Shown: positions 9,901 through 63,129 of the stretch, piece by piece
Numbering within the stretch: position 1 is the stretch's first letter
Layout: every line of letters begins with the position of its first letter
DNA from: Macrostomum lignano
Lineage: Eukaryota
Direction: 5' to 3'
NCBI GenBank assembly: GCA_002269645.1
Contig: NIVC01000073.1
Location: forward strand, 372,001 to 436,000
Length of the DNA stretch: 64,000 nucleotides
The notes under the pieces: model-generated
Seen by the model: the letters and a program-made list of their open reading frames with translations, nothing else
What the model was told of the DNA's origin: nothing
The model's database searches: none
Program-made: the position numbers and the translations under genes

Positions 9901-10941
9901 AGAATGGATTGCTAATCTATAGCCATATCTGCTGGGTGAAGGAACAGAATGGATTGCTAATCTGTAGCCATATCTGCTGGATGAAGGAACAGAATGGATT
10001 GCTAATCTATAGTCATATCTGCTGGGTGAAGGAACAGAACGGATTGCTAATCTGTAGCCATATCTGCTGGATGAAGGAACAGAATGGATTGCTAATCTAT
10101 AGCCATATCTGCTGGATGAAGGAACAGAATGGATTGCTAATCTATAGTCATATCTGCTGGGTGAAGGAACAGAACGGATTGCTAATCTGTAGCCATATCT
10201 GCTGGATGAAGGAATAGAATGGATTGCTAATCTGTAGTCAGAATTATCCAGGGCAGAATCCAGGTGCTCAAACCTCTTAGAGTTCTGCTTTTCCTGCAAC
10301 AGACTCGCAGCGGCAGCAGCAGATATTCTAGACTGCTGCACAATATCCTGCAGATGGTTGCGTTGCGTCTCCAACAGCAGCTCGGTGCTGCGAGATGTGG
10401 CCATTCCAGCCTCTCTAGTAGCTTCATCATCGTAATCTGGATCGAACTCTGGCCCCGGTCGATGAGTATGAAATTCGGACTCGATTGCGGCGTCCTCATC
10501 AGAATGTTGCGCTGCTCCTAAGTTGAAAGGGGCACTGATGCAGGGCCTCTGTGCAGTTGCTTCTGCTGAGCGCTGCCTGACTTTGTTGCCTGAGGCAGCT
10601 GTCTGACTGTTTCTGACTTGCCTCTCTTTTATTGTTGCTGTTGCTGTTGGCGCTGCCGCTGCTTTAGGCGTATTTTCTTTCGCACGCGGCGAGCTTAGGT
10701 TTGTACTTTTCGAGCTGTCAATCCTGTGGCTGCTGGGGTGACTGGAAAATTACCAATATTAAAGTCATTGCGTAAAGGCTTTGCAATATTTTTAGGTTTG
10801 TTTACTTTTTTACAATTAGTTAACAACTTACCCATTGCTACTAAGTAGCCGCTCGCCATTTCTAGCCAAGTAGTCCAACCTACGCTGGCAAATCTCTTGT
10901 CGCCTCTGAGTCCGAGGTGTGACAGTTGAATCGCTGTACAT
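6902..10941 (-). CDS. Uncharacterised 481-aa protein with Q-rich/coiled-coil middle and C-terminal Cys4 zinc ribbon (CPECG-x11-CPNCG); complement(join(6902..7291,7671..7860,8605..8892,10274..10741,10832..10941))
   Basis: ATG at 10941. Four GT-AG introns have matching phases (2,2,2,0) and give one open frame of 1446 nt ending in TGA at 6902. Exons are GC-rich against repeat-filled introns. The exon 4 donor could alternatively be at 7665. Confidence 0.75.
7332..7570. repeat. About 28-bp minisatellite (CCCCACTTTGACCTTTAATATCCCAAAT)
   Basis: Degenerate tandem units in an intron. Confidence 0.85.
7985..8530. repeat. About 46-bp minisatellite organised as a 137-bp trimeric higher-order repeat
   Basis: GTGGAGAATTCTAAC recurs at 8132, 8269 and 8406. 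Confidence 0.88.
8895..10240 (+). repeat. 45-bp minisatellite family A, locus 1 (TGAAGGAACAGAATGGATTGCTAATCTATAGCCATATCTGCTGGG)
   Basis: About 30 tandem copies; the same unit occurs at 41975-42597 and inverted at 48170-48413. Confidence 0.97.
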
Positions 10942-14864: not shown

Positions 14865-14938
<74 letters not shown>

Positions 14939-14979
14939 TGTTTGTTTGCTTGTCTGTCTGTCTGTCTTGTTTGTTTGCT

Positions 14980-15010
<31 letters not shown>

Positions 15011-23829: not shown

Positions 23830-28882
<5,053 letters not shown>

Positions 28883-29700: not shown

Positions 29701-31884
29701 GCGTGCGATTGAAAATAAAAACAAGGCAAGGTCAAGGTCATAAAACCGAACCAACCAAACTGGTTGCTCTTCCGGTGCACACTGGCTCGTATTTACCCAC
29801 TAATACTGCAGTTGAGGCATCAATTCATTGATGACACAAAGGTGACAAAGCTACAAAAGATCAAATGTAACAAAAGCGCATAATCAAGCAAATTTTGATC
29901 TCTTTTGATGACGATGCGAGGCTTAAAGCAATCGCATCTACGATACCAACTTAACACTTAGCACACTTAGTAGCAAGGATATAGGATTCAATGTGTTACA
30001 TGCATGTTGTCCTTTTCAAAAATATATATTCAACAGTTAGAAAGAAAGAAGCAATTATTCAATATGTTATTGCATTCCTATTATTTTTAAGGTCCACTCA
30101 AAGATTTTAAAAAAGAACCAAAAGGCGATATTCAAATGTCTTGGTCATCTTTATTAATAATGCCCTACTCCAAAATTGGCAAAAGTATTCAAGGTAATTT
30201 AATTAATTTTATCTTCGATACAGTATCGTATATTCTCTAGAATGCAATTTTTGTCTGCACACCTATACTTAGCTGTTTCGTGTTTTGGTTTAATCTGTTA
30301 ATCAGCAAAACAATCGATTTCTGAGAGGCCTCAATAAGTGATTTGCTATAAGCTTAATGTCTACACCGTTAAAAAAACTATTTTCGAGACATTTAAAGTT
30401 CGCCACAGATGCATATTGTGATCCATGCGACTGCAGTAAATTTAAGTACAAAAGATCTTTTTGAAGAAAAGAAAACACAAGCCAATTTGAGTCGCAATAA
30501 AGAAAATTAACATTCTTCATATGGTTCGTCATTTTTGCTAACTAATGTAGACTCGTAATTTACAAATTCTAAATGCTTCTATTTATAACGTAAAAAATAA
30601 GGAATGCATTACTTACCAGAAGGACTTGTAAGTAGCATGCAAAGCATTGTTAAAGAAGCAGGTAAAGTCTCACTTCTGATCCTGGTTTCGGTAAGTAATT
30701 AGAGAAACTCTGAAACTTCCAACAAAACGATATAATTGCATGATTAGCGAGAAACTATGAATTTTCCAAGTCGAAACGTGATGGAAAAAGATTGCTTGGA
30801 AAGTTATGACCCGCACAGAGGACGCTAAGGTGGCCACCACTTTTTGGAGGCGTGTCAGATATATGGAATAGAACTCTCTCATTGGCTGATGGGTCTCACG
30901 TCTCACCCGACTCTCACCATACTTCTCATACCTAGCTACACGACTTTAATGTACCTCAAACTACATTTACTTTTACATGTGTCTCAGTGTACTTTTCACA
31001 TTCATAGCATCTTAGACACACTACTCATAGTAAAAAATTACGTCAGTTTTAAAGATTTTTCAACAAGCGTTTGCACTTGTTTCGTGTTTTCTATACATGT
31101 AGTTACAGAACATGCACAAATAGAAAAGTATATTTGCATGAATGAAATTGCATGGTAAAAATAATACTTGCTCTTCATGTCAGAAAATCAGAAACTAAAA
31201 AACTTACAAGAATTCTGGGGTATTTTTAAATTTGAAAGCCCTAATTATTGAAATTCACTCGCGGTTGTAGTCATAGAATTGCGGCTGCCATGTGCCATCA
31301 CAGCAGACTCGTTTTGTGAGGACTCGCTGGTAGATCTTCACCAGCTACAGCGTCGAGATGGTGCAGTTCGTCTTTTTGCGCGGAAACTGCACCAGCAGAA
31401 CGCCGCCACCTTCAGCATCTTATCGTTGCGATCTCAAATCTCTGGAGTCAGCCGTCCTTGCCGAGCGTTCACCGAGTCCACACAGACAGCACCAATTCCA
31501 CCAAATGTACAAAACTTAATTGTGTGTGAAACACATCCAAATATGTTGGACGATCGGCCTAGAGTTCCAGAAATGTGTCCGCATAATCGGCAGCTGCTTT
31601 GCCGAGCTCCAGCGTGTGGTCTGCCTTGGAGTGCTGGCAATGACTGCACTGCATGCTGCTCGTTCCATGTAGATCCGCCACAGCACAAACACTTGCAGCT
31701 TCTTCTTGATCTGCATTGGCAACAGAGGGAATATGCAGCCGAGTCGGAGGGAGTACCGCGTGACCTTGCGATGCCAAAATACTACCAACTGGTGGGCATC
31801 AAGCTGATGGGTTGTCGGATATGCCGGGGATACCAGATCGGGAATTTTACCTTCTTGTTGACCGTGGGGGTAAAACGATACCTA

Positions 31885-32290
31885 GAAAAATTTACAAGCC
31901 CTGAATTCCCCGCGTCCAGCTGCCGCTCTAGCGTAGCCGTCAGCGGCCACTTCTCGGCGTTGCAGAGCAGGACGGTTTCGACCACCGCCTGCAACAGCCG
32001 AGCCCTCTGGAGATCGGACAGCGCTTCAGACTGGAGGACGACTCAGATCGAACGGGAAGGCCGCCCAGGCAAGTCCTCTGCGCCTCCTTCACGTGGGACA
32101 CCAGACCGCCGAGGTAGGTGAACCGCTGGCAGCGTGCGAGCCTGGTCGTCTGAACGTCTGTGCCGCGGCATGTCAAGTCCGCTGGGGATGTCGACCGCCA
32201 CGGCGTGCATGCGGAAGGCTTCGAATCTGCCGCCAAAAAGTGAACAAGCAGCTCCGTTTTAAACAATAAAGTTGAGCCTCTTCGCCCCGA
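31885..32290 (-). mobile_element. Degenerate RTE-like non-LTR retrotransposon RT/thumb fragment
   Basis: Frameshifted motifs RFTYLGG..RTCLGGL and QAVVETVLLCNAEKWPLTATLERQLDA are typical of non-LTR RT C-termini (F.YLG; A.VESVLLYGAE.W.LT..LE..LD). Confidence 0.65.
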
Positions 32291-33441
32291 CCGAGTTAAA
32301 AATGGGCTCCCACAGGAGTCGAACTGAAATTAGTGCTGGAAGACAACTGATTGAATTGCTCAGTGTCGTGTCGGTAGACTTGCACCAGAGACTGCCGAGA
32401 GACTGCAGCACAGCGTTGGTCCGGGCTCCTGTGGCTTATTAACGACTCAAACGACTAATGCGACGGAGAGACGACTTTTGAGTCACGAGCGCATCACGTA
32501 AGAGTCACTAAAGAGTCGTCCAAGATTCGTTGTGTTAGCGCTTAACTATCTACTAACTCAAGTCAGACTAAATAGAGTTGTAAAAATGCGAAATGCGATT
32601 CTAATTCATAGTGACTCAGATATGCTTTAGACGCAACTCAGTGATTCCACAGCGACTCCAGCAAGCCTCGGATACGACTCTACGGCCCCAGAGTCATATA
32701 GAAGCATCCCAAAAACAAACCAAACTTGCCAAGTACTTAGTAAGTCAACGACAACAATACAACCTCGTGGCAAGTACCCTAAGTACTTTCCAAGTACATA
32801 CAATAAGTAATTTCCAAGTATGCGATGTTTTCTTGAGTCACTTCTCAAGTACTTTCAAAGTATATTGCGTGCGCGGAAAATTTTACCGTGACTTCTTGTC
32901 GTTTTAGAATCGTCTATATGAGCTGCATAGAATGCCGCCATATTTCCGAAGCGCGGCTGCGCCTAAAACTTGCTGCGTAATTTGCATTTTTTCTATGTCC
33001 CCCCACAAGAGTTGTGGGGCATAAGAGTTTACGTTCCCACGCGCATGTTCTTCAGTGTTTCGAATAAAAAGGAGAGACAGTGGAGGCGCTCGCTTCACTT
33101 TTCTCTCGCCCGCATCTGCGGGCCTAAAGGCATGGCCATTTCCTCGGCTGGGCTGCAGAACCACAGCAGCCTGGGCCCAGAAAAACCGTGCTTCGAGTTC
33201 AATTCTTCGTTATCTGACGTGAGCAGAAGGTGCAGGCAGGACGCAAAATCCTACCTGCTACAGTCTAGAACTCCCTTTTTACCTATGTCACCAGCATTGA
33301 CTCTAAAACGAGTCTGGGGCGACGCAAGTGACTCTGAGACGCTCCTTGGCCTGGGTACCGTTTTTCATCAGACAGCGCCGCGGCCTTTGAATTGAAAATC
33401 CTGAAAGATGTTCGTTACCTCTTCTTGGGTCAACAAACATC

Positions 33442-33735
33442 TGGCGTTGGCGGTTGTGTAGCCAACAGGGGGTTGTAGTGCGTCGGACTCACGACTGAAA
33501 GGTCGGGGGTTCGATACCAGATCCCATTCGGAACGATTTGTGTCCTTGAAGACACAAATCGCGTTGCTTCAGTTAACCCAGCTGTACTTCGCAAAATGGG
33601 TTCCAGCATTAGCTGGGGTAATTGAGGGGGTGCGTGGCGACCCCCTCCAGTCCTTGGACTAAACAGCCGTACGCAGCCTTCAGATGCGCCGTGCAACAGC
33701 TACGGCTCAGCTGTCGGTTGCACATCTGGCCTATA
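33442..33735 (+). mobile_element. tRNA-derived SINE, second copy
   Basis: B-box GGTTCGATACC; long collinear similarity to 17920-18185. Confidence 0.75.
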
Positions 33736-34212
33736 GGGGAGGTGTATCTAATTATTTTGATTATATTCTTTATCAAGCCGGTGAGCAGAGCTACGAAAAG
33801 CTGGATTGCGCCTGCAGCGGCTGCTGTACGAAAAGTCCAACTTGCTCCTATTCAAGCAGCAGGCGGATGCCACCGTAGTTGCCGCAGGCCGCGCACCCCA
33901 AGTTGAGTACGGGCTGGCTGGGGCACCATTGAAAATTATGAATTTTGGTTGGTTCATTTCTTTCTCGTGTACCGACCTACATTCCTTGCACTGGTATTTG
34001 GATTTGTACAGGTGAGGTTGGACATAGTAGAAGCCTGGTGTAACGACTAAGAGCATATTTATTGATTCTGAAGACCCTGCGCTGATGGTTGAAAGTAGTT
34101 GAATCGGCTATTTGGTCAGCCAATTGAATGAGGTTTGAAGAATGCTTATTAAAAATGTATCATGTGATCATGTGATGTGAATAAACACTAAGAAAGCGAA
34201 ATTAGTAATCTA

Positions 34213-34241
34213 CTAGCCATTTAGCCCCCCGCTGGGGGGCT
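34213..34241 (-). mobile_element. Helitron-type 3' terminus (GC hairpin + CTAG|T)
   Basis: On the minus strand, AGCCCCCCAGCGGGGGGCT hairpin, then AAATGG, then CTAG, then T. Confidence 0.5.
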
Positions 34242-34719
34242 TTAAAATGACACCAAGTGGTTTTTATTTTGGCATAATAGTAACCATTAATTTCCATTTC
34301 CATTAATAAAAAATTACTTTTTCTCATTTTGAAAAAAATAAATTGCCATGAATCAAAACTTTCACCAGCAAAATAGTTTCCTTCATCAGCCCAAAACCCT
34401 TTTTCAATCAGCAAATAGTGCTTATCTTTTCAAGCACAAACTCTTAGAGCATATCGTCATTGGCCTGGGCATATTCTGGTCCGCAGCAGGAGCTCAATAT
34501 GTCAATTCCTGACGGCCTTTGACACCCATCTTTATTAGCCTAACTCAAAGAATCAAACCTTTAATAAATACGGTGGTATTTCCTATCAGCAAAAATCAAC
34601 ACCACTTGTGTGTACTATTTCATTATCTGAATTACATGAGCTACCTGAGCCGTACTACTTGACGATCTGACAATCGCTCAACAACCTAACACCCTCCCCC
34701 CAACAATTCAACCATCCCC

Positions 34720-34865
34720 ATGAGCCTTGACATCTCAGCAATTCCCCCAGTAAGCCTTGACATCTCAGCAATTCCCCCAGTAAGCCTTGACATCTCAGCA
34801 ATTCCCCCAGTAAGCCTTGAAATCTCAGCAATTCCCCCAGTGAGCCTTGAAATCTCAGAAATTCC
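34720..34865. repeat. 30-bp minisatellite (AGCCTTGACATCTCAGCAATTCCCCCAGTA)
   Basis: About 5 copies. Confidence 0.9.
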
Positions 34866-34879
34866 AGGAATCTCAGGAA

Positions 34880-35900
34880 CTACCTTAGCAGTTTGCAGTT
34901 TGTTCCCTTTGCAGTCTGCAATGATCCTTTAGACAATCTGCAGTTCTTCTGTCGGCCGGCTCCTCAGTCTCCTGCTTAGCAAACTGCAATGATTTTCAAC
35001 AATAAAAATTTGCTAACAATTTAGTACGGTTCACTAATCAATTTTCGATACATATTCGCAATGTTTTGCACAAATCAGCATTAAGCAATACCTTCATTCC
35101 TAAATCCCCCAAAAGAAAGCAATCTCAGCACTTCCTCCCCATAAGCCTTTGAAACCTCAATTCAAGCAATTCTTCCAGTAAGCCATGGCATATCAGCAAT
35201 TCCCCATGGGCCTTGAAATCTCAGAAATTGCCCCAAAAAGCCATGCCATCTCAGCAATTCCTGAGATATGCCCACAACAACCTGAAATTATTCCTTCTAA
35301 TCCCAAAAAACAGACTGCAGTTATTATCTTAGCAGCCTGGAGTTATCCCCTTGCAGTCTATAACTTTCATTAACATTAAGCATTTATCCCCTCAGCAGCC
35401 TAGAACTGTCCCGTCAGCAAACCACAATAATCCACTCAGCAGTCCACAGTTCTCAGCAATCCCCTAAACAACCTGCACTTAATCACTTAAACTGTACAGT
35501 TTTGAAACTGATGTCTTGCTATCCTATCTTCTCTGAGAGTTGTCCTGCTCAGAAGTCTACCAGTCCTCCAAGCAGCCCCCTCAGCAGTTTTCAGCTATAC
35601 GCTTATAAGTCTGGAGGAACTACCTCAGCAGTTTTAAGTTTGTCCCCTTTCAACAGTTTTCAGTTTGTCCCCTTTGCAGTCTGCATGAATGACCCTTTCG
35701 CCAATCTGCAGTTCCCCTCAGCAGTCTGCAGTTCTCCTCTCGGCCGGCTCCTCAGTATCCTCAGCAAACTGAAATAAAAAAAGGATCCTTTCAAAAATCT
35801 AATTTTTTTCTCAGCATTTATTACGGTTCAGTAATCAATTTTCGATACATATCGGCAGTTTTTTCACAATTCAGCCTTCATTTTAACAATAAATTTAGCA
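34880..35900. repeat. Local dispersed duplication (34880-35090 vs 35640-35870)
   Basis: Shared CCCTTTGCAGTCTGCA..GGCCGGCTCCTCAGT..TACGGTTCA.TAATCAATTTTCGATACATAT. Confidence 0.75.
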
Positions 35901-36574
35901 GCTTGGCAATTTGAATATTTCATGGAGCTAGGCAATACCCATTGATGCGATGAGTAATACTCGAAGCATTTTTTTCTATATACTAAAAATGAAATGTCTG
36001 TAACTAGCTATGCGATAGATTTCAGAAAAAATGGCTCAACCGATTTTCTTCAAACTTGCACCATTCGATCAGAAATTTTCCTGGGACGGTACATGCATCC
36101 TGGCTAAGAAATTGCTCAATTTTAAAGGGATTAAATATTCGAAAAACATGCTTTTTTGCAAAGGTCAAGCAGCTCTTTCAACCTGGAATGCATTGTAAGA
36201 ATGCTAGAGAAAAAACTGACTGGCTGAATTCCGATTGTGATAAAGATTGCATCACAACAATTTGAAAACAGTGTCGAAGAAATGCACACCCGACTTGATT
36301 AAAATTGTGTAACCATATTGCTAACTTCAATTAAGACTGATACTGGCTGACTGAGAAATTGATTATGTCATAAATTTTTACTCTAACCGACTTGCGACTT
36401 TCTAACCGAATTGAATTATAAGGGCCACAATTCATGTGCTCCAATTAAAAAAAGATAGCCTAGATGCGAACAGACTGGACTGCTAATGTAGCGAACTGGG
36501 TTCGAATCTTGGTAGCGCAAAATGATTTTTTATTAAAACACCTTAAAAAAAAACTGCTAAACATAAAAGAAGCG

Positions 36575-38820
36575 CTATGTCAAACATACAAGAGCCACAA
36601 TGTCAAACATTAAAGAGCCACCATTTCAAACCTAAAAGAGCCACCATGTCGAACATTAAAGAGCCACCATGTCAAACATGAAAAAGCCACCATATCAAAC
36701 ATAAAAGAACTACCATGTCAAACATTAAAGAGCCACCATGTCGAACATTAAAGAGCCACCATGTCAAACATAAAACAGACACCATTAAGAACATTAAAGA
36801 GCCACCATGTCGAACATTAAAGAGCCACCATGTCAAACATAAAACAGCCAACATTTCGAAAATTAAAGAGCCACTATGTCAAACATTAAAGAGCCACCAT
36901 TTCAAACCTAAAAGAGCCACCATGTCGAACATTAAAGAGCCACCATGTCGAACATTAAAGAGCCACCATGTCAAACATAAAAAAGCCACCATATCAAACA
37001 TAAAAGAACTACCATGTCAAACATTAAAGAGCCACCATGTCGAACATTAAAGAGCCACCATGTCAAAGATAAAAGAGCCACCATGTCAAACATAAAAGAG
37101 CCACCATGTCAAACATAAAACAGCCAACATTTCGAAAATTAAAGAGCCACTATGTCAAACATTAAAGAGCCACCATGTCGAACATTAAAGAGCCACCATG
37201 TCAAACATAAAACAGACACCGTTAAAAACATTAAAGAGCCACCATGTCGAACATTAAAGAGCCACCATGTCAAACATAAAACAGCCACTATGTCGAACAT
37301 TAAAGAGCCACCATGTAAAACATAAAACAGAGCCACATTTCGAAAATTAAAGAGCCACCATGCCAAACATTAAAGAGCCACCATGTCGAACATGAAAGAG
37401 CCACCATGTCAAAGATAAAAGAGCCACCATGTCAAACATAAAAGAGCCACCATGTCAAATATTATAGAGCCACCATGTCAAACATTAAAGAGCCACCAGG
37501 TCAAACATGAAAGTGCCACCATGTAAAACATTAAAGAGCCACCATGTCGAACATTAAAGAGCCACCGTGTCAAACATAAAACAGCCACTATTTCGAACAT
37601 TAAAGAGCCACCATTTCAAACATAAAACAGCCACTATGTCGAACATTAAAGAGCAACCATGTCAGACATAAAACAGAGCCACCATGTCAAAAATTAAAGA
37701 GCCACCATGTCGAACATTAAAGAGCCACCATGTCAAAGATAAAAGAGCCACCATGTCAAACATTGAAGAGACCCCATGTCAAACATTAAAGAGCCACCAT
37801 GTCAAATATTAAAGAGTCACCAGGTCAAACATATACATGACTCCATGTCAAACATTGAAGAGCCACCATGTCGAACATTAAAGAGACACCATGTCTAACA
37901 TAAAAGAGCCACCATGTCAAACATTAAAGGGCCACCATGTCAAACATTAAAGAGCCACCATGTCGAACATTAGAGAGCCACCATGTCAAACATAAAACAG
38001 ACACCATTAAGAACATTAAAGAGCCACCATGTCGAACATTAAAGAGCCACCATGTAGAACATAAAACAGCCAACATTTCGAAAATTAAAGAGCCACCATG
38101 TAGAACATAAAATAGTCACCATTACAAACATGAAAGTGCCACCATGTAAAATATTAAAGAGCCACCATGTCAAACATTAAAGAGCCACCAGGTCAAACAG
38201 GAAAGTGCCACCATGTCAAATATTAAAGAGCCACCATGTCAAACATTAAAGAGCCACCAGGTCAAACATGAAAGTGCCACCATGTAAAACATTAAAGAGC
38301 CACCATGTCGAACATTTAAGAACCACCATGTCAAACATAAAATAGCCACCATGTGAAACATATGCGTGACTCCATGTAAAACATTAAAGAGCTACCATAT
38401 CAGACATATACATTACTCCATGTCAAACATATACGTGACTCCATGTCAAACATTAACGTGACTCCATGTCAAACATTAAAGAGACACCATGTCTAACATT
38501 AAAGAGCCACCATGTCGAACATTAAAGAGCCACCATGTCAAACATTAAAGAGCCACCATGTCTAACATTAAAGAGCCACCATGTCAAACATAAAACAGCC
38601 AACATTTCGAAAATTAAAGAGCCACCATGTCAAACATTAAAGAGTCACCATGTCGAACATTAGAGAGCCACCATGTCAAACATTAAACAGACACCGTTAA
38701 GAACATTAAAGAGCCACCATGTCGAACATTAAAGAGCCACCATGTAGAACATAAAACAACCACCATTTCGAAAATTAAAAAGCCACTATGTCAAACATTA
38801 AAGAGCCACCAAGTCAAACA
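36575..38820. repeat. 23-bp satellite (AAAGAGCCACCATGTCAAACATT), about 95 copies
   Basis: Direct reading. Confidence 0.97.
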
Positions 38821-38934
38821 TAAAATTTACACAATTTCAAACGTAAAATTAAGCGTCATGCCAATTTTAAAGGAGCCACTATAGAGCTAAGGAAATTGTA
38901 GCACTAGCTACTTATTTTATGGTGGATGCTTACT

Positions 38935-39030
38935 TTTTCGGGATGCTTGCTATCTGGGGGATGCTTGCTATCTGGGGGATGCTTGCTATCTGGGGGATGC
39001 TTGCTGTCTGGGGGATGCTTGCTGTCTTGG
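38935..39030. repeat. 18-bp minisatellite (GGGATGCTTGCTATCTGG)
   Basis: 5 copies. Confidence 0.9.
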
Positions 39031-40509
39031 GATGATTTCTTTTTGCATTACACTTTATTAGAGCAGTTTGTCTGTCGTCTTTGTGATGGCTTTATTTGGC
39101 TGTCTTTTTGTTACTTGTAGAGAACAGAGATTCTATCCAGATGTCCCCCAACGGGGGGCGAAGATTGCTAGTTTTTTTCTACAAATCAAATTTGCTTAGT
39201 AAATTTGAATATTTTTGTATGGCAAAACTTATTCATTAAGTGTGCCTGCGAATTCCTATTAGTTGGGCCCGAAGCTATAAATGAATGAATAAATTTAATT
39301 TTAATCATCCGCCGAGGAGGCAGACTCGAACCTTGGACCTTACGCCTAGCCTAAACCTGGTCCTAGTGCCTACACTGCGGCTATTCCGCCTACTGATGGG
39401 AGGGCGCAAAAATCAGCCATATATGCTTCGGCACTGCAGTCAGATGCATAGCAGTGATAGGCTGCTCAGTGTGCACAGGTTGTGTGCAGGCAGAGCCAAT
39501 GCACAGTTGAGTGAAATCTATAAATAGCAATTGTCTATGCAGTCAGCCAGAGCACAATGTACACACGCCGCCAATGAGCATTATTTTTCTCTCCCTTGCT
39601 GCATCCAGTACTGAGGCCTACTACACAATGAAGAGAGAAAACACACAATCTCACAAGAATTTTCAATTGAATAAAGCTAGTTTGAAAAAAAAATCGGTTC
39701 AGGCATTCAGGCTGTAGACTGAAATACCAGTCAGACAGACAGATCTTAGAGATTTAATATATTGTGATGATATACTGGTACTAAAAATAATAATGCTAAT
39801 TTTTAGGAGGAATTTATGGATTTTTTACCATTCCAAAGCTACACAAGAAATTTCTACTTCGATCTGCTTGCAAAGTTCTACAAAGTTCTGCAAAGTACCA
39901 ATCTACTCTCTGATTGGTTGAAACTGTCTGGACCAATAGCAGCCCATGTACGCTTGTCCTCCACTAACCACTATTCCCATAAATTGGTTAAGCAGGAAGG
40001 CACTTCGAACTCTTCTCTTTGCCGTGTGAAAGACAATTTGAGCTGGCAAAGTCGATTTCTTTTCGTTTCTTCAGCCAAACGCCGACGTTTAAATCGGTGA
40101 GACATGCCGATCTCCTGCTGCTAATTAACCATTAACAATTGCAATTCACGCTTGACCTTTTAAAGCATGACTTGATTCATTAGTAATTTATGATCCGCAA
40201 ATTTCAATTTCATCTTGCACCAAAAATTGACTTTCTTCTAAATTTCTAATTTTTACGCGATCTGACCAGTATCCACTGAATAACATTTATTAATGTGACT
40301 GTCAAAAAAATGAAGGTTTAAGCTATTTGATGAAGCTTTCTGTCACTTTCACGCCTTCAGCTACGTAAACAGAGTTACAATTTTGATTGAAATTTCACTG
40401 AAATCTGTCCGATTTTCCAACATCTAAATCCCATCAGTTTTAAAGCCGCCCCTAAGCTCTTTAAGTACGGGACTAGGAGCTTTGTAAGCTTGCACAACCA
40501 CATTCGTTT

Positions 40510-41846: not shown

Positions 41847-44800
41847 ATGAAGATCACAATTCTGACACTCACCCTGTGCGCCCTGATGCTAGCTGGAATG
41901 GCCAACTGCCGGCCTAGCAACTATCCGCTGGATCATGAGGCAGAGGCTGCTGCAGTTCAACAACACAGGTTAGTGCTGGGTGAAGGAACAGAATGGATTG
42001 CTAATCTATAGTCATATCTGCTGGGTGAAGGAACAGAATGGATTGCTAATCTATAGTCATATCTGCTGGGTAAAGGAACAGAATGGATTGCTAATCTATA
42101 GCCATATCTGCTGGGTGAAGGAACAGAATGGATTGCTAATCTATAGTCATATCTGCTGGGTGAAGGAACAGAATGGATTGCTAATCTATAGCCATATCTG
42201 CTGGATGAAGGAACAGAATGGATTGCTAATCTATAGCCATATCTGCTGGATGAAGGAACAGAATGGATTGCTAATCTATAGCCATATCTGCTGGGTGAAG
42301 GAACAGAATGGATTGCTAATCTATAGCCCATATCTGCTGGATGAAGGAACAGAATGGATTGCTAATCTATAGCCATATCTGCTGGGTGAAGGAACAGAAT
42401 GGATTGCCAATCTATAGCCATATCTGCTGGATGAAGGAACAGAATGGATTGCTAATCTATAGCCATATCTGCTGAATGAAGGAACAGAATGGATTCTTAA
42501 TCCATAGCCATATCTGCTGGATGAAGGAACAGAATGGATTGCTAATCTATATCCATATCTGCTGGATGAAGGAACAGAATGGATTGCTAATCTATAGGCC
42601 TAACTGAGGGAAGCTAAGCAGTATCTTAGAACTCAAACGGATATCTGAATGTTTTACAGCCGACACCCAGCACAACTGTTTGCTTAAACCCAGAATCTGT
42701 TGGAAAAAGCAGTTTGTATTGTCAAAAATTCTCACTGTAGTTTTGCTGAAACGATATCTAAGGGTTGACTGACAGTTTTAACACGTAGAAAACAGTGTTT
42801 GCTCAGTGATGAAGCCAGAGTTTGGCAAGGAAATTCACACAGGCAAGCCATTCATAGCTTCTGATTCTGGATGCCAATTAAAACTACGACGCTTAATTTC
42901 AGCAGAGCTTCTCCTGTTGTAGCTTGCTGTAAGATGGTGCTGTAAAGTGCTGTAGGGGTACTGCAGGAAGTGCTTTAGAGGGTGATGTAAAAAGTGCTGT
43001 ATGAAGGGTGCTGTATGAAGTTCTGTAAAGGGTGATGTACATGTTAATGAAGTGCTGTACCTGTAGAGGCGTTGTAGAGGGTGCTGTAGAAAGTTCTGTA
43101 GGGGTACTGTAAAAAGTGCTATAGAAGTTGCTGTAAAAAGTCCTGTCATAGCGAATGCTGTAAAAGAGACTGTAGAGGGTGGCTGTATTTGACGCCATTT
43201 TGAAGGCGCTGCTAGACAGGCTGTCCTGTTTGAATGCTAATTAAGTCTTGGAACTGTCTACTCAAGAAGCCTGCTGCCAGCCCTGTAATTAATATTTATT
43301 TAATTACTCCAGACGCCGCTTCAAAATGTCTTTAATGATACAGCCAGAGATAGAATGTATCTATGCTCGTATTCTGACTGCCGGAATTCATTTGAAGCTC
43401 GACCAAGCTTGCACTGATCTACTTGCGTCACATAAATTTATAGGCCCATTCTGAAGCGTCTGAGCTCCGATCACCGCCTCGCCGACCTGCTGTCATCGAT
43501 AGAAAGGCTGGGATCCACCAGCGGACAGTACGGGATCGACCTGCAGGCCAAGTGCGACTTTTGGGGATTCTGCGTTGTTTGAGGAGTGCTCTTTGTTGTA
43601 GACATGGTGTAGGTGGTGTAAAGGCGGGTGTAGAGGGAGGTGTAGAGGGAGGTGTAGAGAGAGGTGTAGAGGGAGGTGTAGAGAGAGGTGTAGAGGGAGG
43701 TGTAGAGGGAGATGTAGAGGGAAGTGTAGAGGGAGACGTAGATGGTGGTGTAGAGGGAGGTGTAGAGGCAGGTGTAGAGGCAGGTGTAGAGGGAGGTGTA
43801 GAGGGAGGTGTAGAGAGAGGTGTAGAGAGAGTTGTAGAGGGAGGTGTAGAGAGAGGTGTAGAGAGAGGTGTAGAGGGAGTTGTAGATTATGGTGTAGAGA
43901 GAGGTGTAGAGAGAGGTGTAGAGGGAGGTGTAGAGGGAGGTGTAGAGAGAGGTGTAGAGGGAGGTGTAGAGGGAGGTGTAGAGGGAGGTGTAGAGGGAGG
44001 TGTAGAGGGAGGTGTAGAGGGAGACGTAGATGGTGGTGTAGAGGGAAGTGTAGAGGGAGGTGTAGAGGCAGGTGTAGAGGCAGGTGTAGATGATGATGTA
44101 GAGGGAGGTGTAGAGGGAGGTGTAGAAGCAGGTATAAGGAGCTGTAGAGGGTGCAATTTAAGGAGATCTAACGGTATTTTTCGCAAGAGTGGAGTACCAG
44201 TTAATACTCTAAAGCAGGTACGAGTACGAGTAGCTCGTAAATCTCCCCAACTTTCTCATATCCCAGCATCGATCCTCATCCTGCACCCAGTCTCGCTCAA
44301 TCTCTCTTAACTCTGACTGAAAAGTCAACACGTACACTCGAAAAGAAGCTTTTCATGTTTAAATCGAATACTGAATCGATTCCAGTATTGCAGCAGACGT
44401 GACGGATTATATATGATAGTCTCGATTCTCGGTGTTATCTTTACCCTCAGCACAGGGGTCTCTATTGCTCATGAATAATTCATTAGATACCAACTTGAGT
44501 GCCAATCTCTGTAGTAGTGTCTGCTCAGACTTCTCTTCAGTATTTCTCCCTGTTTGAGGGCTCCGGCAATAAGCTGGGTCCAGAATCCAGTCCCGATTGT
44601 TAAATCTCATCAGAGAGCTCTGCGCGTTGGCGAGTTAAACCTTTATCACCGGTTTATTAACCTTTGTAAACAAAACTGAATTTGTGCGCTCTCCTCTCTG
44701 CCCTCTCTGCCCTCTCCTCTCTGCCCTACCCTCTTCCTGCCTACTCCTCTCTGCCCTACCCTCCCTGCCCCACCCTCTTCCTGCCCTCTCCTCTCTGCCC

Positions 44801-45303
44801 TACCCTCTTCCTGCCCTCTCCTCTCTGCCCTACCCTCTTCCTGCCCTCTCCTCCCTGCCCTCTCCTCTCTGCCCTACCCTCCATGCCCTCTCCTCTCTGC
44901 CTCCCCCTGCAATCGCCTAGACTAGTAGGTCGGCTCCCTGATCCCATCACCAAGTCCCCACCCCCACAGCTCTTCCGCTTACCACCTTGCAGTCACGTGC
45001 GTGCAGCAGTTTTCAATATTCAATTCAAATTTTGAACTTCCCCGCAACCAAGCCGTGTAGCTGCTGTTGTATTGTTAATCTATCAAAATTCAGGTATTCC
45101 CATTTGTACAAAGCATGAGAGCGGGTTGATTAGAAAATCTCTGCCATAGGGTTAACAAAATACTTAATCGTGAATTTTTTCCTACAAAAAACTGCTTTTA
45201 ATCAAGCATGCTTAAGCCGGTTGTGTTTCTATCATATTTCTCTGTCACTGCTTCATTAATTTTCAGTGGACGAAAGAAACGCAGCGTTCGAATGGAGAAG
45301 TGA
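41847..45303 (+). CDS. Secreted neuropeptide precursor B (88 aa), PTH-like/PXXXamide-like candidate; join(41847..41968,43444..43551,45267..45303)
   Basis: Signal peptide MKITILTLTLCALMLAGMANC; two phase-2 GT-AG introns; [44 protein letters not shown]-stop; an acceptor TTTTCAG at 41832 precedes the ATG; paralog of the gene at 23938. Confidence 0.88.
41975..42597 (+). repeat. 45-bp minisatellite family A, locus 2 (neuropeptide B intron 1)
   Basis: Same unit as 8895-10240; begins immediately after the splice donor. Confidence 0.97.
43605..44135. repeat. 12-bp minisatellite (GTAGAGGGAGGT)
   Basis: Neuropeptide B intron 2; explains the GVEG ORF. Confidence 0.96.
44685..44910. repeat. CT-rich repeat (CTCTCCTCTCTGCCCTACC)
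   Basis: Direct reading. Confidence 0.9.
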
Positions 45304-45544
45304 CGAGACAGTCAGACAGACCAAGCTCTGAAAGCTTGTGACGAGGAACTTGAAATTTGACTAACGGTATTCTTGATCGAATTTCAGTTCGTTGTGAATG
45401 TCAGTAACTGTAATGAATTAACTAATAATTATTGAAACATCATTGAACTGCTACTATCAGTGAAATAAATTTGTTAAAAATCGTAACGCTGTTTTGACAT
45501 TGCACGTAGGTAAAAGAGGCATTTTGGTCCTTTGATAATTTGAT

Positions 45545-48169: not shown

Positions 48170-48413
48170 TGTATTCCTTCACCCAGCAGATATGGCTATA
48201 GATTAGCAATCCATTCTGTTCCTTCACCCAGCAGATATGGCTATAGATTAGCAATCCATTCTGTTCCTTCACCCAGCAGATATGGCTATAGATTAGCAAT
48301 CCATTCTGTTCCTTCACCCAGCAGATAAGGCTATAGATTAGCAATCCATTCTGTTCCTTCATCCAGCAGATAAGGCTATAGATTAGCAATCCATTCTGTT
48401 CCTTCATCCAGCA
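48170..48413 (-). repeat. 45-bp minisatellite family A, locus 3 (inverted)
   Basis: Reverse complement of the family A unit, about 5 copies. Confidence 0.95.
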
Positions 48414-48682
48414 GTTTCTGCCAGCATGGTTCTACGAAGCAGACCTACGTTTATGACATTGGAATGACCAAGCAATGTCGACAGAAAGTGATCTGAAAGT
48501 CAGATTTAAAAGGGACAAAAACAGAATTATTTTTTCCAGGGTCTATTCGCTTCTTACCCGATGCTCTCGTCAACAGTTCGACTCGGCGAGTCTCGCCAGC
48601 CTTTGACTTAAGCCTTCAAGGATAGCAAGGATGGCAAGCAAAGCCCCACCCGCTACTATAGACTATGTCTTGTGTCTAAAAA

Positions 48683-53100: not shown

Positions 53101-53975
53101 AGGAGTGGCTATTCTCTGAGGTTTTGGGCGATTCTCTATGGGATTGTGGGGGATTCTCTCTATGAGATTGTGGGCGATTCTCCTCTATGAGATTTTAGGC
53201 GATTCTCTCTGATATTGTGGGCGATTCTCTTTATGGGGTTGTGGGCGATTCTCTCTATGAGATTGTGGGCAATTATCTCTATGGGATTGTTGGCGATTCT
53301 CTACATGTATGAGATTGTGGGTGATTCTCTATGAGATTGTGGACGATTCTCTGTATCGGATTGTGGGCGATTGCTAAGGGTGACAGGCAATTCTTAAGAA
53401 TGCTCACTCCAGACACTCACCTGACTCCTATAGATTGTAGCCCAACCGAAATCAGTGACCTTCAAAGTCCGCAAATCGCCAGTCAGCAAACAATTCTCGC
53501 ATTTAATATCCCGATGCGCAATGCCCAGAGTCTGCAGGTGAGCGATTGCCCGGCAAATTTGCACAAAGTACATCTTGGCCAGACTGGCCGGAATGCCAAC
53601 ATCCGGTACGATGTGATTGAACAGCTCTCCGCCCGTGAGCAACTCGAAGAACATGAAATACGTGTCGCCAGCCTGTCTGACGCCCAGAAATTTGCACACA
53701 TTCTCGTGCGGACTGGACTCCACCAATTTGAGCATCATGTACTCTTTACGCACCTGGCGTAGTCGATCTTGTCGTTGAGTTTCGAAACCCGGACCAGACA
53801 TGGAGTCTTTCGAGTCGAATATTTTGCAAGCCATTCGCTGCTCAGTTTGAGGATTATAAACCAGTTTCACTATGGAGTTGCCACCCTCGCCAAGAGTGTT
53901 GCCCCAGAAAAAGTTCTCGGCAAAGTGGCCGGTATAGGGCGATGAAGATTGGCTTGATGATGCTGATAATGACAT
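50159..53975 (-). CDS. CHEK1: Checkpoint kinase 1-like Ser/Thr kinase (583 aa); complement(join(50159..50539,51396..51818,52671..53063,53421..53975))
   Basis: Kinase domain (LGEGG, GGELF..IVPDVGI, HRDIK, DFGxATIYR, AEPVDYWSAGVVLIAMLTGEMPWD); SQ/TQ linker (SSSQ, GFTQP); C-terminal KA1-like RLTRFFT..ILVEFRRTAGSGLQF matching CHK1 RMTRFFT..ILVDFRLSKGDGLEF. All introns are phase 0, GT-AG. Confidence 0.88.
50570..51380. repeat. 22-bp minisatellite (GGGTTGCTCATAATCAATCATT) in CHK1 intron 3
   Basis: Direct reading. Confidence 0.96.
52185..52470. repeat. 78-80-bp tandem repeat, about 3.5 copies, with CCAAT boxes, in CHK1 intron 2
   Basis: GCCAATGAGA at 52211, 52289, 52368 and 52448. Confidence 0.9.
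53110..53370. repeat. About 24-bp minisatellite (GTGGGCGATTCTCTCTATGAGATT) in CHK1 intron 1
   Basis: Direct reading. Confidence 0.88.
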
Positions 53976-56828: not shown

Positions 56829-59800
56829 TCAAGAGAACAGCTGCATAAGAGAGCTGCTGTAGGCCATCGGACGAACAGTCGGATGAGGAACGCAGTCGAA
56901 GCTGGTAAATTTTGGCGACAGATCTTTGCCGCCAGTCAGGGTGATGTAGGCACCTTTGTTGCCCATTGTGTCGCAATAGTTCGGCGCTGAGAATACCGTA
57001 ATACACCGACCGGAGTGAGCCACTTCATAGCCTTTCTCCTTCACTTCGTGACTGCGGACTATGTAGTCCAGGCCGTTGTTCTGCAGCGGAGAGGGGGCCA
57101 CAGGTTGCTCAACCAGTACAGTAGTGCATTATGCAGCTTTCCAATTATCTACGCTAATATATAGGAGCTCGTTTTAAATGAAGTGGAAAGGTTGATTCAC
57201 TTCAGGATCTAAGAGAGGAGGCCCATGCAGCAACTGAGGATCCGGAAGACAGGCTTGGCAACTGAGGATCTGGGAGGCTGGCCCAGCAACTGAGGATCTG
57301 GGAGGCTGAGCCAGAAACGGAGAATCTGGGAGGCTGGCCCAGAAACTGAGGATCTGGGAGGCTGGCCCAGCAACTGAGGATCTGGGAGGCTGGCCCAGAA
57401 ACTGAGGATCTGGGAGGCTGGCCCAGCAACTGAGGATTTGGGAGGCTGGCCCAGCAACTGAGGATCTGGGAGGCTGGCCCAGCAACTGAGGATCTGGGAG
57501 GCTGGCCCAGCAACTGAGAATCTGGGAGGCTGGCCCAGCAACTGAGGATCTGGGAGGCTGGCTCAGCAACTGAGGATCTGGGAGGCTGGCCCAGAAACTC
57601 AGAATCTGAGAGGCTGGCCCAGAAACGGAGAATCTGGGAGGCCGGTCCAGAAACTGACACTCTGGGAGGCGTTTATGGCTCACCTTGCAGAATCTTTCAG
57701 TCACATCCGGTCCAAACTGAACGGCTACGCCACGTTTAGAGGGCGCCCTGCCAGGAAGGTCCTGCGGATCGGACCAGAGCAGCTCGGACATCGGGCCCGA
57801 GTCCGGGATATCCATGTTGCGGTCGATCTTACGAATATCCTCCAAAGTGACATCGTCGGCTGAGAAAATCGGGGAGAAGGGCATGCAAAAAATATCGGTG
57901 TTTTTAATCGCAAGTCTTTCATTGGGGAAACCTGGTGCTGGCGTCCCCTCAAATGAAATGGCGTTCATTTTTTAATAATACATGCACAGAGGCAACAGTA
58001 TCGCCAAATACAGCACTTACAAGAGAACAGTCCACCATGCATGACAAGAATCCGACCGTCAATCAAATGAGCCAACGGCAACAAGTTGAAGACCTCCCGA
58101 AACAGTTGCACCATTTTGTCGGCATATTTGGCCTTCACCTCGCCTTCGAAGCCGTAAATCTTGTTCATGTACTCAGATTCGTGATTACCCCTGGCTAAGA
58201 AGAATGATTTAGGATACAACAGCTTCAGGGAGAACAGCGTGAAGATGCACTCAACAGAGAAGCTGCCGCGATCGACAAAGTCGCCATTGAAAAGGTAGGG
58301 ATTGGTCTCCGAGGGTAGGCCGTTGAGCTCGAAGATGTTGAGCAAATCGAAGAACTGACCATGCACGTCGCCGCAGATTGTGAATTTTGTGCCTTCGGGC
58401 ACCGCGACGTCAACTAGAGTGGCTTCTGCTGATAGTAGGGCCTGGGTAATTGGGGCCGGTTAGTAAGAGTGCATTGAGCTAGCACTATATATAAAAATAT
58501 AATAAAATTGATAACAGAATGTGCTACAGATCGTGCTAAAACACACAGGGGGGGGGGGTAATGTGCTAGTCTTAATACTAAAATACACAGGGAGGCTACT
58601 GCGCTAGTCCATATACTAAAATACACAGGGGGCTAATGTGCTAGTCCATATACTAAAATACACAGGGGGCTAATGTGCTAGGCCAAATACTTGAACACAC
58701 AGGGGGCTAATGCGCTAGTCCAAATACTTGAACACACAGGGGGCTAATGTGCTAGTCCAAATACTAAAATACACAGGGAGCTAATGTGCTAGTCTAAATA
58801 CTAAAATACACAGGGGGCTAATGTGCTCGTCCAAATACTAAAGCACACAGGGGGCTAATGTGCTAGTCCATATACTAAAATACACAGGGGGCTAATGTGC
58901 TAGTCTTAATACTAAAATACACAGGGGGCTAATGTGCTAGTCCATATACTAAAATACACAGGGAGGCTACTGCGCTAGTCCATATACTAAAATACACAGG
59001 GGGCTAATGTGCTAGTCCATATACTAAAATACACAGGGGGCTAATGTGCTAGTCCATATACTAAAATACACAGGGGGCTAATGTGCTAGTCCATATACTA
59101 AAATACACAGGGAGGCTACTGCGCTAGTCCATATACTAAAATACACAGGGGGCTAATGTGCTAGTCCATATACTAAAATACACAGGGGGCTAATGTGCTA
59201 GTCCATATACTAAAATACACAGGGGGCTAATGTGCTAGTCCATATACTAAAATACACAGGGGGCTAATGTGCTAGTCCATATACTAAAATACACAGGGGG
59301 CTAATGTGCTAGTCCATATACTAAAATACACAGGGGGCTAATGCGCTAGTCCATATACTAAAATACACAGGGGGCTAATGTGCTAGTCCATATACTAAAA
59401 TACACAGGGGGCTAATGTGCTAGTCCATATACTAAAATACACAGGGAGCTAATGTGCTAGTCCATATACTAAAATACACAGGGGGCTAATGTGCTAGTCC
59501 ATATACTAAAATACACAGGGGGCTAATGTGCTAGTCCATATACTAAAATACACAGGGGGCTAATGTGCTAGTCCATATACTAAAATACACAGGGAGCTAA
59601 TGTGCTAGTCCATATACTAAAATACACAGGGAGCTAATGTGCTAGTCCATATACTAAAATACACAGGGGGCTAATGTGCTAGTCCATATACTAAAATACA
59701 CAGGGAGCTAATGTGCTAGTCTAAATACTAAAATACACAGGGGGCTAATGTGCTAGTCCATATACTAAAATACACAGGGAGCTAATGTGCTAGTCCATAT

Positions 59801-62800
59801 ACTAAAATACACAGGGAGCTAATGTGCTAGTCCATATACTAAAATACACAGGGGCTACTGCGCTAGTCCATATACTAAAATACACAGGGAGCTAATGTGC
59901 TAGTCCATATACTAAAATACACAGGGAGCTAATGTGCTAGTCCATATACTAAAATACACAGGGGGCTAATGTGCTAGTCCATATACTAAAATACACAGGG
60001 AGCTAATGTGCTAGTCCATATACTAAAATACACAGGGAGCTAATGTGCTAGTCTAAATACTAAAATACACAGGGGGCTAATGTGCTAGTCCATATACTAA
60101 AATACACAGGGAGCTAATGTGCTAGTCCATATACTAAAATACACAGGGGGCTAATGTGCTAGTCCATATACTAAAATACACAGGGAGCTAATGTGCTAGT
60201 CCATATACTAAAATACACAGGGAGCTAATGTGCTAGTCCATATACTAAAATACACAGGGAGCTAATGTGCTAGTCCATATACTAAAATACACAGGGGGCT
60301 AATGTGCTAGTCCATATACTAAAATACACAGGGAGCTAATGTGCTAGTCCATATACTAAAATACACAGGGAGCTAATGTGCTAGTCCATATACTAAAATA
60401 CACAGGGGGCTAATGTGCTAGTCCATATACTAAAATACACAGGGAGCTAATGTGCTAGTCCATATACTAAAATACACAGGGAGCTAATGTGCTAGTCCAT
60501 ATACTAAAATACACAGGGGCTACTGCGCTAGTCCATATACTAAAATACACAGGGAGCTAATGTGCTAGTCCATATACTAAAATACACAGGGGCTAATGTG
60601 CTAGTCCATATACTAAAATACACAGGGGGCTAATGTGCTAGTCCATATACTAAAATACACAGGGAGCTAATGTGCTAGTCCATATACTAAAATACACAGG
60701 GGGCTAATGTGCTAGTCCATATACTAAAATACACAGGGAGCTAATGTGCTAGTCCATATACTAAAATACACAGGGAGCTAATGTGCTAGTCCATATACTA
60801 AAATACACAGGGGCTACTGCGCTAGTCCATATACTAAAATACACAGGGAGCTAATGTGCTAGTCCATATACTAAAATACACAGGGGGCTAATGTGCTAGT
60901 CCATATACTAAAATACACAGGGGGCTAATGTGCTAGTCCATATACTAAAATACACAGGGAGCTAATGTGCTAGTCCATATACTAAAATACACAGGGAGCT
61001 AATGTGCTAGTCCATATACTAAAATACACAGGGAGCTAATGTGCTAGTCCATATACTAAAATACACAGGGAGCTAATGTGCTAGTCTAAATACTAAAATA
61101 CACAGGGAGCTAATGTGCTAGTCTAAATACTAAAATACACAGGGGCTACTGCGCTAGTCCATATACTAAAATACACAGGGGGGGGGCTAATGTGCTAGGC
61201 CAAATACTTGAACACACAGGGGGCTAATGCGCTAGTCCAAATACTAAAATACACAGGGAGCTAATGTGCTAGTCTAAATACTAAAATACACAGGGAGCTA
61301 ATGTGCTAGTCTAAATACTAAAATACACAGGGGCTACTGCGCTAGTCCATATACTAACATACACAGGGGCGTTACTTCGCTAGGACAATTACGGTTAACA
61401 GGTGTAGAGAAGGTAAGCCTCCAAGGCTCAGAGAGTCTACATGCCTGACCGATTAGAAAGTCAGGGCAGCTGTACACCCTCTGTGTACGAGTGTGTGCCT
61501 GCGTACAGGATTGCCTTAGTACTGTTTGTGCAAGACGCAGTCGCCGAAGGCTTTGCACCAGGGTGTCCGCAAACCTGCTGCTGCTGCGATTATATCAGAT
61601 AGTTTTTTATCTGATAGATAGTTAATGAACGCTGCTCACCTTCATATCGACAAGTATCTGATAGGCGTAGCGCCGATGCAGCACCTTGGATTTCTTATAA
61701 TAGTCAAGCAGTTGGGTTACGAACTCTCGCGTCACTTTATTGCCTTCCTCCGATAGTTTGGGCCCGTCGTAGCTGTCTTCGATGGTCATTGATTGCAGCG
61801 ACTGGCTAATCTCGTCGCACGGGCTTACCTGGGAGATTTTAATTAAGAAGGGAAGATTGTAGTTTTAATTAAGACATATATTAACATTAATTAATACGTG
61901 GATTAATCAAGACTATAGCAGCATTCAGCTGTTTGCATGCTCCATAGGATACAAAGAACGGAATGAAATTATTAATAAAAAAATGAAGGTATCATTACTA
62001 TTATAGGCACACAGATTAGCAGAGACGGTAGTTAGAGAACGTACATAAAAGAGTTCCGATCTCGACCCTGTTCTATCAGTTATTAAAATACTTTTAAAAA
62101 GCTACTGGCAAAACCTGCTGTTAGTGAGATTACTCAGATTTGAAACCAGTCACTCCTATATGATGTCACTTCCGAATGGTCTATCACAACTAATTAATCT
62201 GTAATTCATTCATCCCTCATATTTAATTGATTTGTTACATTAAATTCATTTTTAACACCCAACTGATTTGTTAAATCAAATTAATCTGTCACACCAAATT
62301 GATTTATCTGTCACACCCAGTTCATCTATCACACCAAATTGATTTTATCTGTCACACCCAATTGATCTGTCGCACCAAATTAATGTCACATTAAATGAAT
62401 TAATTTTTGACACAAAATAATCCATCACACCAAATAAATTGATCGTCACACTGTAAACTGTCTGCTTAACTTGCAGTGCTGGTGGATCTAAGCTGAACGG
62501 CACTTTTATTAATTGTTATATTCGAGTCAATCTGTACCCCAGAGCAGACAACTCACCCTCTTCTCTTCGTAAGCAATAGCTTTCTCGAACGCTTTCTGTT
62601 GCACAATCTTCTTACACTCGGTATACTTGGCTTTAGCATCCGAATCGCCAGGCCGGCGCCTGTGCACCTGTTCAAAATCGGTAAGGGCCAATTTAAATTT
62701 GCCCAAAGCCATATTAGCCGAAGCGCGCCGATAATAGGCTTTGATATAGGACTGGTCGAGTGCGATAGCTCGGCTAGCGTCGGACAGGGCGTAGCCAAAG

Positions 62801-63030
62801 CACTCGGTTCTCAAGTAGGCAAAGCTTCTATTAGCATAGTAAATGGCGGATTTATCGTACAAATCGATAGCCTTGCTGTACAAATCGATAGCTTGATCGT
62901 AATGGCCCAAGTTGAAGGCTGAGTTGGCTTCAGTTTTAAATTGATCAGCCTCTGGCGGAGGCGAGGTCGGCCCCATCAGGGCGGTGGAAGTCGGAGACGC
63001 GACCGGAGCTTCGGACTCTGTTGATGTCAT
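56829..63030 (-). CDS. PPP5C: Serine/threonine protein phosphatase 5 (TPR + PPP catalytic domain), about 503 aa; complement(join(56829..57080,57684..57859,58021..58441,61640..61828,62557..63030))
   Basis: TPRs ([33 protein letters not shown]); linker [23 protein letters not shown]; GDVHGQ, GDFVDRG, RGNHE, HGGLF, SAPNYC; C-terminal [10 protein letters not shown]. Junctions are in phase. The start Met at 63030 is inferred; in-frame ATGs extend upstream to 63126. Confidence 0.97.
57225..57670. repeat. 28-bp minisatellite (GGAGGCTGGCCCAGCAACTGAGGATCTG) in PP5 intron 4
   Basis: Direct reading. Confidence 0.95.
58540..61370. repeat. 37-bp minisatellite (GGGGGCTAATGTGCTAGTCCATATACTAAAATACACA), about 75 copies, in PP5 intron 2
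   Basis: Direct reading. Confidence 0.98.
61405..61510 (+). mobile_element. Unclassified interspersed repeat copy in PP5 intron 2
   Basis: CCTCCAAGGCTCAGAGAGTCTACATGCCTGACCGATTAGAAAGTCAGGGCAGCTGTACACCCT matches 22140-22200. Confidence 0.65.
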
Positions 63031-63129
63031 TTTCTCACCTGAGGCTTGCTGGTTGTTTAATGCTATGGTTGTCGATGTTCGCATGAATGATGTAGAATAG
63101 TGCTTATAGGGAATCTGAAGATACACGTC

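Follow-up and report, generated by a model that had tools for sequence, protein, structure and literature searches.

Do the short exons between positions 41847 and 45303 of a repeat-rich stretch of Macrostomum lignano DNA form a gene and, if so, what does that gene encode? The stretch, called the window here, comprises 64,000 nucleotides of contig NIVC01000073.1 (assembly GCA_002269645.1, positions 372,001 to 436,000 of the forward strand), and the locus in question is referred to as gene B. Gene B is a real, expressed three-exon gene of M. lignano, confirmed as a gene model and, for its expression, through transcript-derived annotation. It probably encodes an 88-residue preprohormone of an amidated neuropeptide or peptide hormone, in a family that appears to be restricted to this lineage. 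The family has at least three paralogs, designated A, B and C.

All parts of gene B lie on the + strand. Exon 1 (41847..41968, 122 nt) begins with the ATG, which has an in-frame TAA 12 nt upstream, and encodes the signal peptide (about residues 1–19/21) and most of a spacer; it ends at the phase 2 donor CAG/GTTAGT. Intron 1 (41969..43443, 1475 bp) closes with the acceptor tttatag/G. Exon 2 (43444..43551, 108 nt) contributes the end of the spacer, a dibasic KR (43454–43459) and the mature peptide from 43460 onwards, and its phase 2 donor, CAA/GTGCGA, interrupts the codon of the last peptide residue. Intron 2 (43552..45266, 1715 bp, acceptor ttttcag/T) is followed by the coding part of exon 3 (45267..45303, 37 nt), which carries the last base of the Asn codon, a Gly codon (45268–45270), RKKR (45271–45282), the tail SVRMEK and the stop codon. 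Both introns are of the GT..AG type and in phase 2, and the spliced coding sequence (CDS) of 267 nt translates into 88 amino acids. An AATAAA at 45464..45469 (+), 161 nt past the stop, is a candidate polyadenylation signal by sequence match. The exon coordinates and lengths, intron boundaries and translation agree exactly with those proposed in the initial annotation of this DNA.

The product is already represented in public databases. It is 100% identical to the M. lignano proteins PAA66186.1 and PAA91788.1 in GenBank (BOX15_Mlig002734g2/g1; UniRef A0A267H0I5), and PAA54611.1 and A0A1I8GG06 differ from it by a single residue in the tail, S83G. The NIVC01 annotation was derived from an RNA-seq genome-guided transcriptome (STAR, StringTie, TACO, TBONE and TransDecoder) and not ab initio (PMC5730564). 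Since that annotation was RNA-seq-guided and its product is identical, a transcript-derived model with the same junctions already exists; the lack of any such transcript had been named at the outset as the observation that would speak against the gene. The accompanying expectation that automated annotation would miss or mis-model gene B was not borne out, the 88-residue product being present in the public GenBank model. The entries are labelled only ‘hypothetical protein’ or ‘Secreted protein’ (A0A1I8GG06) in GenBank and UniProt/WormBase, and what is new for gene B is thus the interpretation of a gene model that was public without a functional name.

The gene is also present in a second genomic copy (L001, NIVC01001581.1), in which all three exons are identical and the surrounding DNA is 96–97% identical. 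The CDS annotated there starts and stops at the same ATG and stop codon as in the window. The introns of the two copies differ in repeat copy number, the CDS spanning 3457 bp in the window and 4194 bp in L001; it is the number of minisatellite copies that drives such large structural differences between two nearly identical stretches.

Such a gene is poorly visible to frame-based lists. In a mechanical list of open reading frames (ORFs), exon 1 of gene B appears only as a 54-residue ORF and exon 3 as a 31-residue ORF, and exon 2 contains no ORF of 30 residues or more. Because the exon ORFs are all short, gene B is invisible at a 60-residue cut-off, as the initial annotation had pointed out. 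The same annotation had described the introns as rich in minisatellites, and this holds for both: by Tandem Repeats Finder, tandem arrays occupy 57% of intron 1 (a 45-bp unit in 13.8 copies at 41974–42597, and 47/12-bp arrays at 42925–43146) and 43% of intron 2 (a 12-bp unit in 45 copies at 43615–44151, and a 30/44/74-bp array at 44701–44901). The intronic ORFs of 65–252 residues derive from these repeats, on both strands. A prokaryote-style ORF track is blind to genes of this kind, in which real exons of at most 54 residues stand among repeat ORFs of up to 252; RNA-seq-guided annotation, unlike the ORF track, captured gene B. The 45-bp unit that fills intron 1, TGCTGGATGAAGGAACAGAATGGATTGCTAATCTATAGCCATATC (41974–42597, +), is found again in a 1.3-kb array at 8907–10237 (+), about 32 kb upstream of gene B, and in inverted orientation at 48174–48414, 3 kb downstream of it. 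These arrays resemble members of a dispersed minisatellite family that a mobile element may carry.

What the gene encodes is best approached through the order of elements in its product: a signal peptide, a spacer, KR, a 31-residue peptide, Gly-RKKR and a six-residue tail. This layout had been described as that of a prohormone with an acidic spacer, and every element of it is present; at a net charge of about −1, the acidity of the spacer is mild. The signal peptides of A, B and C, judged by hydropathy and (−3,−1) sites, have hydrophobic cores with Kyte–Doolittle values of 2.6–2.9 over 11 residues and (−3,−1) sites at residues 17–24. All three paralogs carry the name ‘Secreted protein’ in UniProt. 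In each of them the dibasic KR stands before the peptide and glycine with basic residues after it (G-RKKR in B, G-RRR in A, G-RRKR in C), and these sites do not vary among the three. The mature peptides are acidic (pI 4.4–4.9), contain no Cys and would end in Asn- or Ser-amide. An AlphaFold2 model of precursor B contains no globular fold, and its mean predicted local distance difference test score (pLDDT) of 57.6 is too low for a fold search. Low-confidence helices are predicted for the signal peptide and for residues 44–63, the latter spanning the N-terminal half of mature peptide B. Helical amphipathicity over the N-terminal 17 residues was not above that of shuffled sequences.

These elements suggest a conventional route of maturation. 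The N-terminal signal peptide would route precursor B into the secretory pathway. A PC2-type convertase is then expected to cleave after K45-R46 and at R79-K-K-R82, after which a carboxypeptidase would remove the basic residues and G78 would act as the amide donor for peptidylglycine alpha-amidating monooxygenase. The predicted end product of B is LSSDHRLADLLSSIERLGSTSGQYGIDLQAN-NH2, a peptide of 31 residues with a calculated monoisotopic mass of 3314.685, and the equivalent products of A and C would be a 44-residue and a 31-residue Ser-amide, with calculated monoisotopic masses of 4446.183 and 2984.495, respectively. The most likely role of the B peptide is that of a receptor ligand, as a neuropeptide or peptide hormone, and its gene may be expressed in neurons. 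In M. lignano, the promoter of a PC2 homolog drives expression throughout the nervous system (PMC12435804).

Evidence on the peptide also comes from the paralogs. Gene A is a tandem paralog in the window (23938–28882), about 13 kb from gene B. It was found from a paralogous exon at 26005–26154, detected by TBLASTN of precursor B against the window, and was then completed to three exons. Its exon 1 (23938..24107, +, 170 nt) encodes the signal peptide and spacer and ends at the phase 2 donor GAG/GTGAGC; exon 2 (26005..26154, +, 150 nt) encodes KR and a 44-residue peptide, with its donor, CAG/GTAAGT, at a position homologous to that in gene B; and the coding part of exon 3 (28867..28882, +, 16 nt) finishes the Ser codon and adds Gly, RRR and a stop, with an AATAAA at 28963. 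The 111-residue product of gene A is identical to UniRef A0A1I8GKX0. Paralog C (BOX15_Mlig026345g3, 80 residues) lies on another contig and has exons of 101, 105 and 37 nt. All three genes share the same three-exon layout with two phase 2 introns at homologous positions. Intron 2 always interrupts the codon of the last peptide residue, and therefore the putative amidation glycine and the basic site are placed on an exon of their own, with 16–37 nt of coding sequence.

Conservation among the paralogs is concentrated in the peptide. The family signature is KR-LSSDHR[IL]AD[LM]LxS[IL], a variable Gly-rich linker and GQYGI[DN]LxA[NS]-Gly-basic, within which KR-LSSDHR-x-AD-x-L-x-S and GQYGI-x-L-x-A-x-G-R are invariant in the alignment of A, B and C; the linker is 13 residues longer in A than in B and C. 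The signal peptides and spacers have diverged, and KR, the peptide ends and G-R are unchanged. In the peptide blocks, the ratio of nonsynonymous to synonymous substitution (dN/dS) is 0.07–0.12, with synonymous sites near saturation (proportion of synonymous differences, pS, 0.56–0.67). Together, the alignment and dN/dS show that the mature peptide is conserved selectively relative to the rest of the precursor. A, B and C are old duplicates under peptide-level purifying selection, a classic signature of a bioactive peptide.

Does this family have relatives elsewhere? In Pfam, neither precursor B nor exon 2 of A nor the mature peptide matched any family at E up to 10; CRF, ELH, Pigment_DH, calcitonin and PTH are among those not matched. 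A hidden Markov model profile of the mature peptide, run against all 1.84 billion representative proteins, found only three M. lignano paralog clusters and two further matches, to fungal ankyrin repeats carrying GGQYGTALQAAS and to an unrelated repeat protein, both of which were judged false. M. lignano was the only species returned when B, A and the profile were used in word-indexed searches, and of 113 pattern matches in a scan of metagenome contigs none was confirmed. The PDB would be expected to include CRF, urocortin, PTH, calcitonin and glucagon-type chains; a profile search of it at E up to 10 returned polymerases and a xylosidase only, with no peptide hormone and no CRF or urocortin chain. 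A motif search of the supplementary tables of Schmidtea prohormones (PMC2953531) found no relative of A, B or C. A full-text literature search with the peptide motifs and gene identifiers returned nothing, the flatworm surveys of McVeigh (2009) and Koziol (2016) being outside its scope, so that an earlier description is possible. The best reading of A, B and C is as a putative lineage-restricted family of amidated peptide precursors.

The peptides were also compared with known hormones by Smith–Waterman alignment to 22 reference sequences not taken from database records, giving 66 comparisons with z scores taken against shuffles. The best scores were obtained with CRH (3.8), PTH (3.2, for B), Manduca DH41 (2.45) and ELH (2.43). 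A z of 3.8, reached by 0.6% of shuffles, is what chance gives after 66 comparisons. In its mode of working, the family resembles amidated prohormones in general, and it cannot be assigned to CRH/ELH/DH44, PDF, calcitonin/DH31, PTH or NPY/NPF. With single-copy amidated prohormones, such as the npp/spp of Schmidtea mediterranea (PMC2953531), it shares a signal peptide, a spacer, a dibasic site, one peptide, Gly-basic and a short tail. The M. lignano precursors are likewise small (80–111 residues), and the organism has PC2-type processing machinery; A, B and C differ from such prohormones in the separate 16–37-nt exon for the amidation and cleavage site.

Likenesses to individual families are partial. 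To CRH, DH44 and ELH the likeness consists of a long, putatively amidated peptide (44 residues in A) and weak local similarity, with IADML facing ITDML of ELH. CRH-type peptides start with (I/L)S(I/L)D, of which the LSSD start of the M. lignano peptides is reminiscent. The C-terminal half of the latter, however, is Gly-rich and not charged and helical, B and C have only 31 residues, and there is neither a Pfam CRF or ELH match nor significant similarity. As in PTH, the peptide directly follows KR, and the S-E-[IH]-Q-L of PTH is resembled by an N-terminal S-[DE]-H-[RQ]-[IL]; the best local alignment nevertheless covers 13 mid-peptide residues and is not significant, no profile match was obtained, and the M. 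lignano peptides are predicted to be amidated, unlike vertebrate PTH. The 31 residues, predicted C-terminal amide and Gly-rich C-terminal half recall calcitonin/DH31, but the C-terminal Pro-amide, the N-terminal Cys ring and a Pfam match are lacking and z is at most 1.4. For PDF/cerebrin, the peptides are too long (31–44 residues and not 18–22), with no Pigment_DH match and z of at most 1.5. With NPY and NPF, the likeness is to amidated peptides of 30–40 residues. In NPY-family genes a conserved intron falls within a codon immediately ahead of the C-terminal residue, the Gly and the basic site, similar to the phase 2 intron found here. The split codon is that of the last residue in M. lignano, however, and not the penultimate one; the peptide comes after a spacer and KR, and that of NPY directly after the signal peptide; and the RF/RY-amide and proline-rich N-terminus are missing. 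No R-[FY]-amide or PP-fold pattern was found in the peptides, the C-termini being LQAN, LKAS and LNAS, and there was no Smith–Waterman similarity to this family.

That gene B encodes the precursor of an amidated neuropeptide or peptide hormone is probable, and some considerations weigh against it. The support for its junctions comes through the published annotation method and not from reads directly. With no homolog found outside M. lignano, function cannot be transferred from a characterised relative. Secreted, convertase-processed, amidated peptides are, moreover, also made outside nervous systems, for example as gland products or antimicrobial peptides. The family might accordingly encode a processed peptide without a neuronal signalling role, belonging to a gland, the seminal fluid, the adhesive organs or antimicrobial defence; the sequence does not say which cells express the gene, and no homologs of known neuronal function were found. 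Such a role is nonetheless unlikely. Precursors of hormones and neuropeptides typically combine a single peptide, a dibasic site, Gly-basic and conserved ends around a linker that varies, and the acidic pI speaks against a cationic antimicrobial, if not against other secreted roles. Conservation across old paralogs is strong, and reproductive secretions usually evolve fast. A refinement of the hormone interpretation, in which A, B and C would be very divergent flatworm ligands of secretin-type (class B) receptors, of CRH/DH44/ELH or PTH type, is similarly doubtful. It draws on the length and predicted amidation of the peptides (31–44 residues), on an arrangement in which a linker that varies joins two conserved segments, of which the N-terminal one is predicted to be helical, on the LSSD start, and on the fact that the four best alignment scores all fall to CRH, PTH, DH41 and ELH. 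The scores themselves are at chance level and were obtained with reference sequences not taken from database records, though, and the Pfam and PDB searches returned no hormone family or chain. The Gly-rich C-terminal half is also unlike the charged helical half of CRH and ELH. Were the peptides such ligands, the N-terminal helix might form the activating end and GQYGI[DN]LxA[NS]-amide the binding end, in a reading that we regard as improbable.

Two further explanations concern the gene model itself. If the donor of exon 2 were ignored, the product would end in DLQAKCDFWGFCVV, giving a peptide with a C-terminal disulfide ring of somatostatin or urotensin II appearance. Reading through 43551 does open a frame at 43552–43582 (+) that ends in KCDFWGFCVV and a stop codon, identically in the second genomic copy, and a C-terminal Cys ring containing F-W recalls somatostatin and urotensin II. 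The transcript-derived annotated products are spliced at the 43551 donor, however, and all three genes keep this intron at the same position and in the same phase. In A and C, reading past the donor meets a stop after one codon (ending in AR), so that the motif is not conserved. No AATAAA or ATTAAA is found in 43552–44700, the ring has no basic site in front of it, and it lacks the Lys of the FWK core. An isoform of this kind is very unlikely and was rejected, since it needs the donor to be ignored and yields a ring without counterpart in A or C; the DLQAKCDFWGFCVV end was judged coincidental. That gene B is no gene, its short ORFs having come to lie together by chance in DNA rich in repeats, might be argued from the shortness of every exon and a minisatellite content of 40–60% in the region. 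Against this, database proteins match the product exactly, its conservation in the paralogs goes with a dN/dS of about 0.1, and no exon differs between genomic copies that elsewhere diverge by 3–4%. Database identity, paralog structure and dN/dS refute this reading, to which we attach a negligible probability.

The preferred interpretation, a family of amidated peptide hormones or neuropeptides, is of interest because M. lignano is a transgenic model for work on regeneration and stem cells in which peptidergic signalling has been little described. A three-gene family of long, predicted amidated peptides adds candidates for receptor deorphanisation and handles with which to label peptidergic cell types. 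The gain is incremental, as the interpretation alone is new. Should the link to secretin-type receptors prove true, a family that looks lineage-restricted would be connected to an ancient bilaterian signalling system.

The surroundings of the gene pair are rich in repeats as well. The A–B intergenic region at 31133–39889 of the window is about 5.6 kb longer than its counterpart in L001 (4849–7996), and 2.3 kb of the extra DNA (36559–38825) is an array of a 23-bp unit. Intron 2 of gene A contains long (CTAT)n microsatellites at 26880–27170 and 27390–27420 (+) and a minus-strand open frame at about 27740–28300. Other genes in the window could be recognised. At 1149–3975 (+) an NHL-repeat protein exon (Pfam NHL, E 7e-16) is followed by about 1.7 kb of G/A-rich repeat with long frames on both strands (ER/G-rich on the plus strand, SPL-rich on the minus strand), a GC content of 0.59 and strong skew in both GC and AT. 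A LETM1-like gene has exons at 12919–17260 (+; Pfam LETM1_RBD, E 4e-41 and 3.5e-27), one ORF of which runs from coding sequence into an (SVCL)n repeat. Downstream of gene B, TPR and calcineurin-like phosphoesterase exons at 57174–63126 (−) have the layout of a PP5-like Ser/Thr phosphatase, and a protein kinase exon at 53394–53975 (−; Pkinase, E 9e-29) matches the 590-residue Pkinase neighbour of gene B on L001.

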